Positions 19,130 through 30,471 of a DNA stretch of 64,000 bases are shown piece after piece. The position numbers and the translations under genes were made by a program. Numbering within the stretch: position 1 is the stretch's first letter; every line of letters begins with the position of its first letter. The DNA comes from Monocercomonoides exilis PA203 (taxonomy: Eukaryota > Protista > Preaxostyla), in the NCBI GenBank assembly GCA_001643675.2, contig LSRY02000068.1, forward strand, positions 124,001-188,000, in the 5' to 3' direction. The notes below the pieces were generated by a model that saw only the letters and a list, made by a program, of their open reading frames with translations, was not told where the DNA came from and searched no databases.

Positions 19130-22100
19130 ATGACTTTATCTTTGCGTTCTGAAATTGATGTAAGTGATGAAAACAAAGAGCATATTTCCGAAATAGGAGA
19201 TATGTCCCCAGAATCTTTGTTTGAAATTATTGTCGACGATGCTGATCCATTGATAAAACGTCTATCATTCACATTTGAAGAAAGCGATGCTAAAAAACTT
19301 GAAAAACGAAATAAGCAATTTATTCCCAGAAAAGATGATGTACTTGGTTTCGTAACTGAAGATTTTGCTGTTCCTCCATTTTTGAACAATATTACACATC
19401 TTTCCGACCTTTATATTCATAAATCTTTAATTCAAGAATGGTATTCAATTCGTGGTCAGAAATTTCCTTTGAGCATTGATCCTTCCTATTTAACGATTCA
19501 AGGAAAAGTTGGACCAATAAAAGAAACAACAAATATTATTCAAAGGCCATTTTTACAATCATTATTCGGTTATGAAGACATTTTGTTCAATCGTTTGTCT
19601 CCAACAAATGAGAGGCATCTTCGCCAAATAGTTTTATTACATTTGGTCAATCATGTTGTGAAGTCTCGAGAACTTATAGTTTCTCACAATTCGGTGTTAA
19701 GTGAAAAGAAACAAAGCGGACGAGATAAAGATGATGAGTTATTAACAGAATATGGACAGCTTCACAGACTTGATGAGTCGCGTGCATCTAAAACATCGAA
19801 ATCTGCGCCTTCTTCTTCTTCAGAAAGCACATCTCAGCCAAACAAGTACAGAGATCAAGGTTTTGTTCGTCCCCGAATCTTGATAATATGTGCCACGAGA
19901 AATGCGGCATATGAACTTGTGAATGATTATCTTCTCAAACTAATTCCGAGCATTCACAGAGGGAATATTTCACTGGGTGCGAAGTTTAACAGGCTATTTG
20001 GTCCAGAGCCGGAAGAAGAAGAGGATGAGGAAAGAGAAGAAAAAGGTGAAGACGAAGATGAAGATATGGATGTTGAAGAGGAAAATGATGAACTTGGGGA
20101 GGAGGATGAAGGAGAGGAAGATGGAGGAGAAGTGAAGAAGATCAAGCGGCGTTTTAAAAGCTCACACAAAAAGAATATGAAGCCACAGCCCATTCAAACT
20201 GTGAGTGAAAAGCCAGAGTCGTTCAAGCGGACATTCAAAGGCAATGTGGATGAGACATTCTGCTTTGGCGTGGGATTGACGAGGAGAAGTGTGAAGTTGC
20301 TGTGCAATCTGTCAGACGCAGACTTTATAATAGCGTCACCAGCTGGTCTGTCGAGTGTGTTAAGAGGAAGGAGTGTGCCTGACGGAGAAACCGATTTGAA
20401 TCCTGAAGACTCACACAAAAGAGGACGAGGGAGAAGAGGCCGTGGGAGAGGCGGCAGAGGTGGAAGAGGAGGAGGAAGAGGAGGGAGAAGTGATAGAGGC
20501 GGAAGAGGAGGAAGAGGAGGCAAAGGAGGAAGGAAAGGAAACAACGAGGATTATGCCAATGAGAAGTTTCGAAGGCATACAGTCAAATTCTCACTCACTC
20601 CGAGAGCGCTGCTGTCGTCCATTGAGATTGCATTTGTGGAGAATGCGACGCCACTTCTGATGCAAAACTGGGAGCACATAAACAACATCTTCTCTTCTCC
20701 ATTTCGATCAGTCAGCACATCAGCCTTTTCAAAGACACGACGCTTGAGTGAAAGCGAAGGAGAGGAAGTTGATGAGGAAATAGGAGCGGAGAAGAAGAAA
20801 AGGAAGAAAGATGAAGAAGACAGCGAGAGTAAAGAAAGCAAAGAAAGCGAGGAAATCGAGGAAAGTGGAGAAAGTGGAGAAAGTGGAGAAAGTGAGCAAA
20901 GTGAGAGTTCAAGTGAGAAGAGCAGCAGCACTTCTGACAAAAATCAAAGCGAAGAGAGTTCAGAGTCAGATGAATTTGATGTTTCGAAGCAGATCTGGTC
21001 GGGTCTGAAGGCGAAATCAACCACTTTGCCCTCAGAAACGCTGCCTAAACGGAAGCATCCGTGTCTTCACACAACGCCCAAGAACCTCCAGTCCATTGAC
21101 ATGTCGCGTGTATACATCCAAATGCTTCGCGGGATGGGCAAATTCCTTCGCCAGACGATCATCTTCTCTGAGAGCGAGACACCCGAATTGAACTCTCTCT
21201 TCCGACAGAGCGAGTTTGTGTGCAATGCGCTGGGGGGAGGACTGAAAGTGCCGCCTCTGCCGAACAAAGAGTGCATCAGAACAACAATGCCAATCGTGTT
21301 CCAGAGGCTTCACTCGACCAATGCGGAAAAGGCAGAGGACATGCGATACAACTTCTTCATCAAACAAGTGTGTTTCATTCATTTATATAACAAGAATTAT
21401 TCAAATATTCTCTCTTTATTTTATTTTATTTATTTATTTATTTATTTATTTATTCTTATGTTATATTATTTATTCATGTGACTGTCAATATACTTCTCCA
21501 TCTTCCAGTTATTGCCTCTCCTCCGCCCAGTCTCCCGCAGCGCGACCACTCCGTCTGGTGCTCCTCTTCCTCCTCGCCCGCGCACTCTTGTTTATTTCCC
21601 CTCATTCTTTTCGTTTGTGCGTGTGAGGGACTTTCTGCAGCGCCGCTTCCCTTCCCTCACCTCTTCTTCCACCAAGCACCCGCTCTTTGCCGAGGCGTGT
21701 GAGTACACAGAGACACCCGACCTGACAAAAGGGCGTGTCTCTTTCTTCGACGGCAGGACGCGTCTGCTGCTTTACACAGAGCGACTCCACTTTTACCGGC
21801 GGTATGAGTTTAGAAAGGTGGAAAGGGTGCTCTTTTATGGGCCTCCTTCAAACAGGGAGTTCTGCAGTGACATCATGCGGATGCTGGAAAGGGGGATAGA
21901 AGAGGAGAATGATGACAGGAGGCTGAGAAGGAAAGTGCTGAGGAAGACGATGATGGGGGGTACGAAAAAAGCGAGCAAGAAGAAAAGAACAAGAAAGGCT
22001 AATCGGATGGAATTGAGTGGCGGTGCAGATTCTGATTCAGATTCAGACCAGTCGTCGAGTTCTGACTCAGAAAGCGAAGAAGACTTGGAAGATTTGGATG

Positions 22101-24250: not shown

Positions 24251-24255
<5 letters not shown>

Positions 24256-24301
<46 letters not shown>
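24256..24301. repeat. Poly(T) tract, 46 nt
   Basis: Uninterrupted T run about 90 bp left of the foldback element. Confidence 0.95.
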
Positions 24302-24302
<1 letters not shown>

Positions 24303-24909
24303 GAGAAATCTGACGGATTCGCATCAAATATTATCTAAATCAATTGTTGTTTTGTCATTCTGTGCATTAGCAATTGGTTCATATTTTATAAGTAAGTATT
24401 TTTATTGGCACCAGTTTTTTTATTGGCACCAAAAATTATTTTCATGATCTTCATTTCATTAAAGCTCATAAATCTGTTTCATAACTTAAGAACAATAAAC
24501 AAATAAAAATTAAGCTGTACGTCAAATATTTTTTTAAAAAACTTTCTCAGAAAAACGATCTAATAATTTTTAACTTTTATTTTTCGATCAACGTTTTGCT
24601 CGTATTTTGTTGACTGATTGCGGTTGCGAGTTTTTATCACTGTATTCACAAAAACAACTGTATTTTCCGTATTTGTTACTTATTCGTTTTTTTTTTTTTT
24701 GAATCATTTATTTAAGTGCATTTTTGCATTTCACCACTTTTGATTAAACATGCAAAATCAAGTGAATGCGTATGTTTTGTAAAAAAAAGGTCAAAAGATA
24801 TCGTTAAAATTATCTTTTTTTGTATATTATGCATGTTTTGAAAATAAACTTTTATTCAAAATTAAAAAGAAATCTAAGAATCATATTTTTCTTAAAGAAT
24901 TGCATTTAT

Positions 24910-26418
24910 GGCATGATCCGATTATATCGGCACAACCAAAAATGATTTTAATCATTATATTTTGATTTGTTAAATATTATTACAAAAGAATATGCAAATA
25001 AAAATCCTAGGAATTTATTTATTTGAATGAACTTTTGAAGAAAAATATATTCACCCATAATAATTTTAGAAAATTATTTGTATTAAGGGTTCGTATTTTT
25101 TTTGATCTCATGGCACGTGAACGAGACCTTCATGATGAGGAAACCATTTCTTCGCTGAACAAACTCTTCTACGACGAAACAAGCACATGGGAATGGTTCA
25201 AAAGAGAAATAATATCCATGAACCTCCCGATGTGTAGAATTCATAGATGCTATCAACGAATATATCATGATAAGAATTATCACTATTACGCTTGTCCAAA
25301 ATGCGAGATCAAGAAAAGCATTCTTTCAGGAACATCTTTAAGCAGAATAAAGATTGGACTAGGCGTTACTCTTCTGATTTGTTTATATTACTGGCTAGGG
25401 ATTCAAAACAAAACAATTTCTTTGCTTATTTCTGTTGATAAGGACACAGTCGGATACTGGGGAAGTGTGATTCGGTGCGCTTGCTCATAAATGTGGAACG
25501 AAAGACAGCAAGCAATTGGAGGCGAGGGAACAACAGTTGAAATTGATGAAGCAATTTGGCGAAAACGGAAGTACAGGAGAGGAAGAAAGAAAAAGCAAGT
25601 GTGGATTTTCGGAGGGGTGGAAAGATTAGAGGGTGGTGGAGCGGGGAAACTGTTTATGGTCGTCGTGCCAATCAGAAAAAAGGAAACTTTGATGCCAATT
25701 ATCCAGAAACACATAAAAGCTGGAACATTAATTATTTCCGATGAATGGCGTGCTTATTCTTCACAAGAAACAGTTGGATATAAGCATCAAACTGTGTGCC
25801 ACAAAAGACGTTTCAGAGACCCAGAAACTGGTTCGTATACAAATACAATTGAAGGGTTATGGCAACATTTGCGATGCACTTTCCCTCGATTTGGAACAAG
25901 GATCAGACTTATGCATGACTATCTTTCACTGTTTTTGGTGAAATCAACATTTAATTTTACGTTCATTCAATCAATAAAATATCTGTGTTTTGAAAAGGAA
26001 ATTGAACTTGTTCAAATGGAAGAAGAAGCAGAAGAAGAAATCATTGATGAAGACGAGGAGATTCCAGATATGGATGATGTTGTCAATGAAGATAGCGATG
26101 TTGAGTCTGATGAAGATTTCGGAGCAGGAGATGGAGCTAGTGCCTCTGAATATGAGCCTTAAATATTATTCTAATTTGAATAATATCATTTTAAAATGTT
26201 TTTATATATTTTCGAAGCTTTTTAAAAACAAATCAGTCACTTTTTTAATGAAAATTCGAAAATATTTATTTTTGATCAAAAAAGTTTTTTAACATTATTT
26301 TCTCCAAAAACACGTTTCCGCAATTTATCATACTCATATTACTTATGTACAGCATGTATTATTATTATCAGTAAAGTTTCAGAGAAATCTGGGCATACCG
26401 ATATATTCGGATAATGCC
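24910..26418 (+). mobile_element. Merlin / IS1595 (ISXO2-like) DNA transposon, full length, 1509 bp
   Basis: Left TIR GGCATGATCCGATTATATCGG (24910-24930); right TIR 26398-26418 matches 19/21. Perfect 8-bp TSD GCATTTAT at 24902-24909 and 26419-26426. Encloses the transposase ORF. Confidence 0.93.
25110..26162 (+). pseudogene. IS1595/ISXO2-like DDE transposase with one in-frame stop (TAA 25488-25490)
   Basis: Intronless frame with Zn-ribbon-like cysteines (CRIHRC..YACPKC), an HTH-like region (ISVDKDTVGYW), IGGEGTTVEIDEA, WIFGGVER, GTLIISDEWRAY, HQTVCH, TNTIEGLW and an acidic tail. The two track ORFs abut in the same frame. Confidence 0.9.
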
Positions 26419-27501
26419 GCATTTATCTAAGTAATGACAAATTGGAAGTTATCCAATATCAATAATTTGTTTTCAAAAAAACTTACTATATATAATACAC
26501 TTCATGTCAATCGAAAAAACATACACATTAACTTGATTTTGCATGTTTTAACAAAAATGGTGAAATGCAAAAATGCACTTAAATAAATGATTCAAAAAAA
26601 AAAAACGAATAAGTAACAAATACGGAAAATACAGTTGTTTTTGTGAATACAGTGATAAAAACTCGCAACCGCAATCAGTCAACAAAATACGAGCAAAACG
26701 TTGATCGAAAAATAAAAGTTAAAAATTATTAGATCGTTTTTCTGAGAAAGTTTTTTAAAAAAATATTTGACGTACAGCTTAATTTTTATTTGTTTATTGT
26801 TCTTAAGTTATGAAACAGATTTATGAGCTTTAATGAAATGAAGATCATGAAAATAATTTTTGGTGCCAATAAAAAAACTGGTGCCAATAAAAATACTCAC
26901 CTACTAATATTTCATTAATTTTTCACTGCATTGAATCGAAGAATAAATCACTGACAATACCAATAAATTCTAAAAATAGTGGTTATCTCTGAAGAAAATT
27001 CAAAAGTTTGAACCATTCTTTACAAATTTTGAAGTTTTCGAAAATATGTTTATCTACATATGTGATTGTTTTTGAAATCACATTTTTTCATGCAAAATTT
27101 TCGGTTTGAAATTTTCCTTTGAATAGCAACAAAAGAACACAGAAAATGGAAAAGTCATGCAAAAGATATTTTTTTTTTATTTGAGCAAAGGCATTTGTTT
27201 TCAAAACAGTTGTAAATAATTATGCAATTGAAAAGAAAATATTTTCTCAAAAAAATAAACAATCTTTGAAAAAAAAATATTCCGAAAAAAGTTATGTTTC
27301 AAAAATGATAATCAATATATCATTATTCTTATTCGAATAATTGATCCTTTTTTATTCATATTTTTTTGTTCAAAAAGATAATCAGGAATGTTATAATTAT
27401 TTGCATAAAAAGTCGAACGTTTGAAAATTTTTCCCAATTATTGAATGAATGATTCAGGTCATAAAATAACAAATATTTTAATAACTTTCGAATAACACAT
27501 A

Positions 27502-30471
27502 CAATATAAACCGGTAATAATCACATCGGTTTTGCACAACTTTTTGTGACTATATCCGATTGTGACAATATTCGATGCTGCTTTGCACAGAAAAAAATAA
27601 AAATTAATTTATGAAATAATAAATTTTGTGTCGATTTTTTTTTCATTTTTGGAAATTCTACACAAATACACTTTTTTAACTTGCTTGAACAATTTTGATC
27701 ATAAACACACATTATTTTGACTTATTTGAGCACATTTTTGAAAAAGCGAAATTTTTTTAATTTTTGATCAAAAAATCGATTTTTCGGCGAAATATTATCT
27801 AGGTGACAGTCGAATTAGGTGAAATGCATAACATTAAATTTTATATTTGTTGCTTCTTATGTTTATAAAATTACGATTATTGAACGACTCTCACTCCTTA
27901 TCGATCAAGTTTATTTAATTGCAAATAAATTTTTATAATGGGTTGGATCAACATGATGAATTGGTTGTTTCCATATCTTTGAATGGAAAACGAAAAACAC
28001 TTTGCAAGCTCGTATGCGCATATTAATTTTTGATTGTAATTCGTGTTCTGTTTGATATTTTTGGAAAAACATTTTGAACAAAGGAAACAGAAGAAAGGAT
28101 CATTGTTTTTCTGATTTTGTTGGAGATCTGTATAAATAAAAATCAACAGCAAACAAATCGTTTGTCCATTTTACAAATATTTAAATATACTCCTTTTTAA
28201 AATAAATTTATTTGTTATAAACAATTTTGTGCAAAAATAACATTTTCAATCAGAATAGCTGTAGCAATACTAAAAGAAAATAGAAAGTGGAATAAATGAA
28301 TGCATTGATAGATAAAATAATGAAAGAAGTATTTGGTAAGATTCTTTCAAGAGAATTATCAATATTATTTAATAAAATGATTTTGGAAGTCAAAGTGGCA
28401 ATGGATAGTATATTACAATTTTTGATAATGATTTTGTAACATATCTCACTTTTTAGCTTTTTGTTTATTGATTTGAAGAATCTCAGTTGTTTTTGAGCAG
28501 CATTTTGCGAGAGAAGCAACAGCAGAACAGGAAGAGTTCACAAGATGGATAGATTGGAAGAAGAAAGAAGGGTAAATAAGCAAAGAAGAAAAGAAGGAGA
28601 TGATAAGGAAGAAAAAAAGAGAGTAAACGAGAAGGAGGAGAAGATAAAGAAATGTCAAATGAAGCAGTGATTGACAAGTCAATATGGAAGGCAGGAGGTG
28701 CGGGAACAGACAGCTCAGCCAAACGAAACAGAAACAGAGGAAAAGTCGAAGGCGACCGAAGAATAGCAGAAAAGGCGCTGATGTTGTGTTGCACCAGCTG
28801 CTATAAGGAAAGCTTCATTGCTTTGCATTTTTCCATCTTCCAGCGGAACGACAGGTTTTCTTTTTCGCAGGGAAAGCTTTCAAGAAGAAGATGAGGAGGA
28901 GGATTGAAAGAGGAGAATTGGAAGAGAAGGAGAAGGGAAATGGAGATGGACAAATTTAGCTGCTTATTCACTATTAATTTTATTTACGATACTAAATATT
29001 CTTTTTTGATATTTTGTTTATATATATTATTTTTTCCCTCGATTTTACTGTTTTCATTTAACAAAAATAAAGCGAAGGTAATAAAGTATTTGGTTTCCAA
29101 AATGTTTGAAGCCTTAAAGAAAAAATGGAAATGTTGTTTAAGCAATTATCAAATGTTGGTGATGTATTTGTGATTTGTTTCAAACAAAAAAGAATTGGAT
29201 GCTTGTTTATTTTGTTCTCAACAAAAAACAGTTAATTTTGTTTTTATTGAATTTGAAATATAAAAAAAAATCATTGATTGTTTGATCTTGTTCATTTCTT
29301 GAAATAAATCAAAAGTTTATTAACAATAAACAAACTTCTCATAATGACAAACATGAAGCTATTGTTTCAATAATTTTTCATCTCCTACCTTTGTTTCATC
29401 GTTTATCTTCTTTTCCTCTTTCTTCAACACAACTTTCAGAAAGAAGAGCACACGAATTGATAATCAGCTCAAAGTGTAATTATAACCAAGCATTGTGTAG
29501 CATTCGCAAAAATCAGTTGAAGCTTTTTGCTCTTTTCTTTTAATTTTCTTCCAATCTTTGAAAAAAATGATCTCCAAAATTTTCTTTCATTTAGAATCGT
29601 TATAAAATTAATAATATTCTATTTTCATCATTAAGCAATATCCTTTTAACTTATAGAACTCATTTGTACCTCTCAACAATCGTATTTTTATTTTTTAATT
29701 CAAAAAGCTTCTTCAAATTGATAATTCTCTTGAAAGAATCTTACCAAATACTTCTTTCATTATTTTATCTATCAATGCATTCATTTATTCCACTTTCTAT
29801 TTTCTTTTAGTATTGCTACAGCTATTCTGATTGAAAATGTTATTTTTGCACAAAATTGTTTATAACAAATAAATTTATTTTAAAAAGGAGTATATTTAAA
29901 TATTTGTAAAATGGACAAACGATTTGTTTGCTGTTGATTTTTATTTATACAGATCTCCAACAAAATCAGAAAAACAATGATCCTTTCTTCTGTTTCCTTT
30001 GTTCAAAATGTTTTTCCAAAAATATCAAACAGAACACGAATTACAATCAAAAATTAATATGCGCATACGAGCTTGCAAAGTGTTTTTCGTTTTCCATTCA
30101 AAGATATGGAAACAACCAATTCATCATGTTGATCCAACCCATTATAAAAATTTATTTGCAATTAAATAAACTTGATCGATAAGGAGTGAGAGTCGTTCAA
30201 TAATCGTAATTTTATAAACATAAGAAGCAACAAATATAAAATTTAATGTTATGCATTTCACCTAATTCGACTGTCACCTAGATAATATTTCGCCGATTTT
30301 TCATTGAAAAAAGTACCAATACTGAAATAAATTGTGATTATATATTTTCCTCCCTGTGATTACATGCGATGGAAAATGAATGAAAAACAAGCAATAAATG
30401 TCGGTGCATCGAAAAATGTGACAATAAACGAATGTGATTATATTCGACGTGATTATCTCCGGTTTAGACTG
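27502..30471. mobile_element. Old short-TIR non-autonomous element (possibly Tc1/mariner-pogo-like), split by the 578-bp-TIR insertion
   Basis: 27502-27528 CAATATAAACCGGTAATAATCACATCG vs reverse complement of 30445-30471 CAGTCTAAACCGGAGATAATCACGTCG (22/27). TGTGAYWATA-like motifs recur on both sides of the insertion. Confidence 0.5.
27786..30294. mobile_element. Non-autonomous DNA transposon with 578-bp TIRs and 8-bp TSD (Merlin- or Mutator/foldback-like)
   Basis: 27786-28363 is the reverse complement of 29717-30294 (the same 84-aa ORF appears on both strands). Termini GGC...GCC; TSD GATTTTTC at 27778-27785 and 30295-30302. No transposase motifs inside. Confidence 0.92.

Follow-up and report, generated by a model that had tools for sequence, protein, structure and literature searches.

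A published Merlin family F2 copy of Monocercomonoides exilis has an interrupted transposase gene and most probably lies, as a single nested insertion, in an older element of apparent pogo type

Merlin transposons are characterized by 5'-GG ends, target-site duplications of 8 or 9 bp and a DDE_Tnp_IS1595 domain in which blocks 1 and 2 lie 50 to 70 residues apart (Feschotte 2004, as cited in PMC8101967). For Monocercomonoides sp. PA203, more than 100 Merlin copies in at least 7 families, all with 8-bp duplications and many copies being pseudogenes, were described by Lopes et al. 2021 (PLoS One 16:e0251133, PMC8101967), and the protein was found to be only 28 to 42% similar to the Merlins of other taxa. 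Their supplementary alignment of family M.sp_F2 lists LSRY01000081.1:60539-62063, a stretch of 1525 bp (1509 + 2 x 8) which starts with gcatttat-ggcatgatccgattatatcggcac, ends with cggataatgcc-gcatttat and has the same TAA codon as the copy that we analyze here (PMC8101967). A sister family with the ends GGCATGATCCGAAGATATCGT corresponds to F1 of the same study (PMC8101967). The main text of that paper does not use the word "nested", and neither the position of this F2 copy inside another transposon nor the outer element is described there.

We analyzed a stretch of 64,000 nucleotides of Monocercomonoides exilis PA203 (contig LSRY02000068.1, positions 124,001 to 188,000), referred to here as the window. 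An earlier note, made from the letters of the window, had reported a complete Merlin/IS1595-type transposon lying inside a different element with long inverted repeats, which we refer to as the shell. Judged by its sequence, this Merlin together with its duplication is the entry in the published F2 alignment (PMC8101967), and both the copy and the family were thus already known. The features of the locus are collected in Table 1.

Table 1. Positions in the window of the Merlin, its transposase gene and the surrounding shell
Feature	Position	Strand	Basis
TA at left shell end, presumed 2-bp target duplication	24389..24390	.	All shell copies flanked by TA...TA
Left inverted arm of shell, probable pogo-type nonautonomous element	24391..24778	+	Inverted-repeat pair; tip compared with those of 14 copies
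Central loop of shell, left part	24779..24901	+	Aligns to empty-shell loop
Target-site duplication GCATTTAT, left copy	24902..24909	.	Single octamer in empty shells
Merlin family F2 element, 1509 bp	24910..26418	+	End points common to nine other copies; published as LSRY01000081.1:60539-62063 including duplications
Left terminal inverted repeat of Merlin, starts GGCATGATCC	24910..24930	+	Sister-copy ends and genome-wide end pattern
Transposase gene, N-terminal 126 codons: helices, Cys/His zinc-ribbon-like motif, helix-turn-helix	25110..25487	+	Translation, relatives' alignment, structure model
Cys/His zinc-ribbon-like motif, codons 42-65	25233-25304	+	Translation, alignment, structure model
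In-frame TAA stop, private to the window copy	25488..25490	+	CAA in all sister copies; 454 assembly
Transposase gene, C-terminal part (223 codons and stop): DDE_Tnp_IS1595 domain, basic patch RKRKYRRGRKKK, disordered acidic tail	25491..26162	+	ORF, Pfam, alignment, model
Catalytic D146	25545-25547	+	Present in window copy and aligned relatives
Catalytic D211	25740-25742	+	Present in window copy and aligned relatives
Catalytic E248	25851-25853	+	Present in window copy and aligned relatives
Right terminal inverted repeat of Merlin	26398..26418	-	Sister-copy ends and genome-wide end pattern
Target-site duplication GCATTTAT, right copy	26419..26426	.	Repeats left octamer
Central loop of shell, right part	26427..26515	+	Aligns to empty-shell loop
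Right inverted arm of shell	26516..26901	-	Inverted-repeat pair; arm comparison
TA at right shell end	26902..26903	.	All shell copies flanked by TA...TA

The ends of the Merlin were found as the earlier note had described them. The GGC-ended terminal inverted repeats of 21 bp (24910-24930 and, inverted, 26398-26418) match at 19 of 21 positions, both start with GGCAT and each contains a CCGA..TCGG mini-palindrome. They are flanked by a perfect 8-bp duplication (24902-24909 and 26419-26426), and at ∼28% GC the calculated probability that a single octamer matches at 8 of 8 positions by chance is ∼6e-5. The true Merlin unit had been proposed to measure only 1509 bp, and this size (24910-26418) is confirmed by nine other copies that have the same first and last bases as the copy in the window.

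These copies were found by searching the M. exilis genome (82,301,135 bp in 101 contigs), and all copy counts from this search are lower bounds. Including the window copy, at least ∼10 full-length or nearly full-length F2 copies are present, the nine others lying at unrelated sites with 88 to 94% identity, and F2 fragments as well as more distant families were additionally found on many nuclear contigs. Perfect 8-bp duplications, every octamer being different, flank five of the eight F2 copies that have both ends; the other three of these eight full-length copies have no matching flanking duplications, indicating that decay or rearrangement happens in the family. The 21-mer end pattern, with two mismatches allowed, occurs 26 times in the genome compared with 0 times for the reversed control, and all of these occurrences are ends of F2 copies or of copies of the sister family, with which the first 13 bases are in common. 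Since the occurrences lay at full-length F2 and sister-family copies only, no short nonautonomous derivatives with F2 ends were seen among the 26. From the common end points, the pattern count and the duplications at five of eight copies, we conclude that the ends and the duplication are genuine features of a mobile family. With ∼10 full-length copies, fragments and at least 150 genome-wide PF12762 matches above cut-off (from 575 candidates), F2 is a resident multi-copy element of this eukaryotic genome.

The transposase frame extends on the + strand from an ATG at 25110 to 26162 and appears as two pieces in the list of open reading frames, being split by a TAA at 25488-25490. The description of the Merlin as complete thus holds for its ends but not for its transposase gene. 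Similarly, the DDE reading frame is intronless, as had been claimed, in that the colinear alignment needs no intron, but it is not intact, with the TAA separating 25110-25487 from 25491-26162. In an alignment of ten copies, codon 127 is TAA in the window Merlin and CAA in all nine sister copies. An older and independent 454 assembly of the locus (paper supplement) has the identical TAA next to alignment entries with CAA, and the codon is therefore not an artefact of long reads. Both T and C were seen at position 25488 in short-read contigs, as expected from the window copy plus its paralogues. The alignment indicates that the TAA is a private C-to-T nonsense change, Gln127 to stop, in the window Merlin, which consequently does not have the uninterrupted transposase reading frame required of an autonomous copy. 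Among the ten translated F2 copies, a single one has an open frame of 351 codons, and the rest have at least one stop or frameshift. This intact sister copy (L002:1763-2815, minus strand; G000 C14:1519204-1520718) is also flanked by a perfect 8-bp duplication, ACATTTTC.

The HMM search that the earlier note had suggested as a check on the family gave a match to PF12762 DDE_Tnp_IS1595 on 25491-26162 (E 9e-19; 68.4 bits, cut-off 27), and the same result was obtained for the intact sister copy. Together with the GG ends, the 8-bp duplication and the DDE triad, the domain upholds the Merlin/IS1595 assignment. The window copy has the catalytic D, D and E of the three conserved blocks; across 60 aligned relatives D211 is invariant, while D146 and E248 are found in at least 90%. 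When the intact sister protein was modelled, the model was confident (pLDDT 85.7, pTM 0.78) and the predicted order was N-terminal helices, then a small beta ribbon that includes the Cys/His motif and a helical region of DNA-binding-like type, then an RNase H-like core on which D146, D211 and E248 are located, and last a disordered acidic tail. The closest solved folds in a fold search were retroviral integrases and the ISCth4, IstA and Mos1 transposases, all generic DDE/RNase H-like matches with TM values of 0.2 to 0.3; we know of no solved IS1595 or Merlin structure for comparison.

Pfam gave no significant match of Zn_ribbon_IS1595 on the window Merlin transposase and a weak match in 3 of the 60 relatives. 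At 25233-25304 the window protein has a C-x3-H-x-C ... C-x2-C motif that aligns with the relatives' conserved CxxC...CxxC zinc-ribbon pattern and is followed by a helix-turn-helix. A zinc-ribbon domain in a few eukaryotic Merlins was already noted by Lopes et al. 2021 (PMC8101967), and an N-terminal zinc ribbon is therefore not new. The published statement that Merlins lack Zn_ribbon_IS1595 may stem from detection limits.

The outer inverted repeats, put at 340 bp in the earlier note, turned out to be longer: the two arms of the window shell (24389-24778 and 26516-26903) measure ∼390 nt and are 97.7% complementary. The shell is typically ∼985 bp long with inverted arms of ∼385 bp, has no coding capacity and is present in ∼17 or more copies in the genome. 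Every copy is flanked by TA...TA, with no longer repeat in common and no pre-insertion site found, and it is from these flanks only that we infer TA as the target duplication. All shell copies begin GGTGAGTATTTTTATTGGCACC; the left tip in the window reads AGTAAGTA compared with GGTGAGTA in the family, with two G-to-A changes in the first eight bases, and the right tip is intact. Importantly for its classification, the tips of the shell, 42 to 45 bp with two 18-bp subrepeats, match at 90 to 96% those of a 2.0-kb element (L063:111-2127 and L064:98-2115), which in L063 contains an ORF matching the pogo-type transposase domain DDE_1 (PF03184; E 4.4e-12), although the gene is decayed. Because of these shared tips, the shell is best read as a nonautonomous pogo-type element of the Tc1/mariner superfamily, with the 2.0-kb DDE_1 element as its likely parent family.

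The 2.0-kb element (G000 C73 and C36) is itself TA-flanked with 42-bp inverted ends, and a 44-bp tip was found at at least 11 loci. We also considered the shell as a Foldback (FB-type) element and rejected this, as each tip has only two 18-bp subrepeats and the remaining arm is unique sequence. Two other shells hold unrelated inserts, one of ∼4.8 kb that starts GGGTGATTTT and lies at a different position and one of ∼0.4 kb, which shows that other elements now and then insert into shells. The ∼4.8-kb insert splits its shell between L045 (from base 1961) and L053 (up to base 1345; G000 C1:2543876-2548670), has the inverted ends GGGTGATTTTTTTTGA and is not Merlin F2.

When the two halves of the window shell were joined with one octamer, they aligned without gaps to 14 other loci of ∼985 bp at 85 to 92% identity, and at least 14 empty shells have a single GCATTTAT octamer, or a close variant of it, at the insertion point. 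No shell sequence was found in the 1.5-kb flanks of the other Merlin loci retrieved, and no Merlin F2 in the other shell loci retrieved, so that among ∼10 Merlin copies and ∼17 shells the combination of both occurs in the window only. The earlier note had wavered between a simple nested insertion and a composite in which the shell travels together with the Merlin, and had proposed counting solo Merlins, empty shells and composites at other loci. This count (Merlins without shell flanks, at least 14 empty shells aligning through the junction with one octamer and no second composite) is the outcome that the earlier note had named as reducing the find to a one-off nested insertion, and it speaks against the composite. 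We thus consider it very probable that a single cut-and-paste event of the DDE type placed Merlin F2 in the loop of an older pogo-type shell and thereby duplicated the octamer. Joint transposition of shell and Merlin as one 2.5-kb unit via the shell ends would be in keeping with the intact right tip, with the ability in principle of pogo-type ends to move any DNA between them and with the foreign insertions carried by two other shells, but it appears very improbable given that the combination was found only here, that the left tip differs from all sister copies by two substitutions in its first eight bases and that the only pogo-type relatives seen are decayed. Even less credible is that the arms arose as an inverted duplication or palindrome during Merlin insertion rather than belonging to a pre-existing element; they are symmetric about the Merlin and nearly identical, yet the same arms plus loop exist at at least 14 other loci without any Merlin, and their tips are in common with the 2-kb pogo-type element. 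At the locus itself, the read evidence consisted of assembled Logan contigs of one sample and strain, short pieces that are unable to show rare excision, and these contained neither a joint skipping the Merlin nor an empty-site allele. A 124-bp read contig crosses the left shell/Merlin junction with no differences, having 30 letters on the Merlin side compared with the 31 needed to count as a bridge.

Another explanation for the compact, intronless, IS-like form of the Merlin would be contamination with, or recent transfer of, a bacterial IS1595 element, for which the Merlin's length of 1.5 kb, its single ORF, and the Pfam domain and 8-bp duplication that it shares with bacterial IS1595 members would speak. 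Nevertheless, the sequence around the Merlin is a eukaryotic repeat and belongs to a large nuclear contig, the Merlin has an AT-rich composition like that of the host, and the genome also contains the at least 150 PF12762 matches mentioned above. The nearest named relatives of its transposase outside the species are arthropod proteins with ∼35% identity, the other relatives being unnamed short metagenomic contigs. A scan of bacterial and archaeal genomes, one for each species, with this single protein, which had limited sensitivity, gave one bacterial match, at 27% identity, and no bacterial insertion sequence with more than ∼60% protein identity and matching ends was found in it. In the published tree, eukaryotic Merlins stand together with IS1016, separated from it by an ancient split, and no recent transfer from bacterial insertion sequences was reported (PMC8101967). 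Taken with the position of the Merlin in the nuclear repeat, this makes bacterial contamination or a recent transfer extremely improbable.

For the nested insertion, we propose the following course of events. A family F2 transposase of ∼351 aa would have catalyzed the insertion in trans or in cis; its N-terminus would contain a zinc-ribbon-like motif and a helix-turn-helix, its DDE core (D146, D211, E248) would have an RNase H fold, and its tail would be acidic. The Merlin would have entered the central loop of the older, ∼985-bp, TA-flanked shell, and the 8-bp target GCATTTAT would have been duplicated. The window copy would later have gained the C-to-T change at Gln127 while its ends stayed recognizable; with this stop it can no longer make full-length transposase. 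Any mobilization of the shell would be the work of a transposase of pogo type, with Merlin having no part in it.

Comparing the arms of the shell copies (the window and loci L032-L047 and L057), we observed that partner arms within a copy are 98 to 100% identical (mean, 99.3%) while arms of different copies are 89 to 99% identical (mean, 93.7%). In a tree of the arms of 15 shell copies, the nearest neighbour was the arm's own partner in 30 of 30 cases. The shell arms thus show strict concerted evolution, arm by arm. The window shell has the lowest arm identity (97.7%) of the 15 copies. A slowing of arm homogenization by the Merlin insert, which widened the loop, was rejected as the cause: in the shell that contains the 4.8-kb insert, the arms are 100% identical over 374 bp. 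It is conceivable, although we regard it as rather unlikely, that during transposition or through intramolecular conversion one arm serves as the template for renewing the other, which would turn arm divergence into an LTR-like clock for a DNA transposon. Were this clock true, the window shell (97.7%) would be among the oldest, and the age of the Merlin insertion could be bracketed. The clock reading has no bearing on the Merlin itself, which is ordinary.

A run of ∼49 T (24254-24302) lies a short way upstream of the shell. Another element is located 1.4 kb downstream of the Merlin, at 27778-30302; its inverted arms of 580 nt are perfect, its ends read GGC...GCC and its 8-bp duplication is GATTTTTC. 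It has seven genome copies whose inner parts differ in length, giving totals of ∼1 to 5 kb, and we regard it as a probable nonautonomous, long-armed relative of a different Merlin family. Between 24.2 and 30.3 kb, remnants of transposons lie clustered in a gene-poor region, and a UTP25-like gene (ORF 19130-21481; PF22916, E 1.5e-58) is located upstream of it.

Altogether, the analysis confirms a published Merlin F2 copy on a long-read assembly and shows it, most probably, to be a dead nested insertion, which has little significance beyond annotation. The clean series of empty sites offers a textbook demonstration of the 8-bp duplication of Merlin in a metamonad. The shell, previously an "unclassified" repeat, can now be classed as a probable pogo-type nonautonomous element, a small help to the annotation of a genome in which unclassified repeats make up 35% of the sequence (published ONT assembly of M. 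exilis).

Compared with known systems, the shell resembles nonautonomous elements of the pogo/Tigger type in its TA flanks, its lack of coding capacity, its ∼17 or more copies and its sharing of tips with a DDE_1-encoding element. It differs from these in that its arms are 98 to 100% identical within a copy whereas copies differ from each other by 1 to 11%, and it differs from a MITE in its unusually long arms, which take up ∼385 of 985 bp each. With the IS1016 group of the bacterial IS1595 family, the window Merlin shares the catalytic domain family, the 8-bp duplication, a similar length and the single gene, but it resides in a eukaryotic nucleus and its protein has a long, acidic, disordered C-terminal tail together with a basic patch. 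With the Merlin superfamily it has in common the 5'-GG ends, the 8-bp duplication, the DDE_Tnp_IS1595 domain and a spacing of 64 residues from block 1 to block 2; what sets it apart there is the N-terminal zinc-ribbon-like Cys/His motif, uncalled by Pfam in the window protein and called weakly in 3 of 60 relatives.
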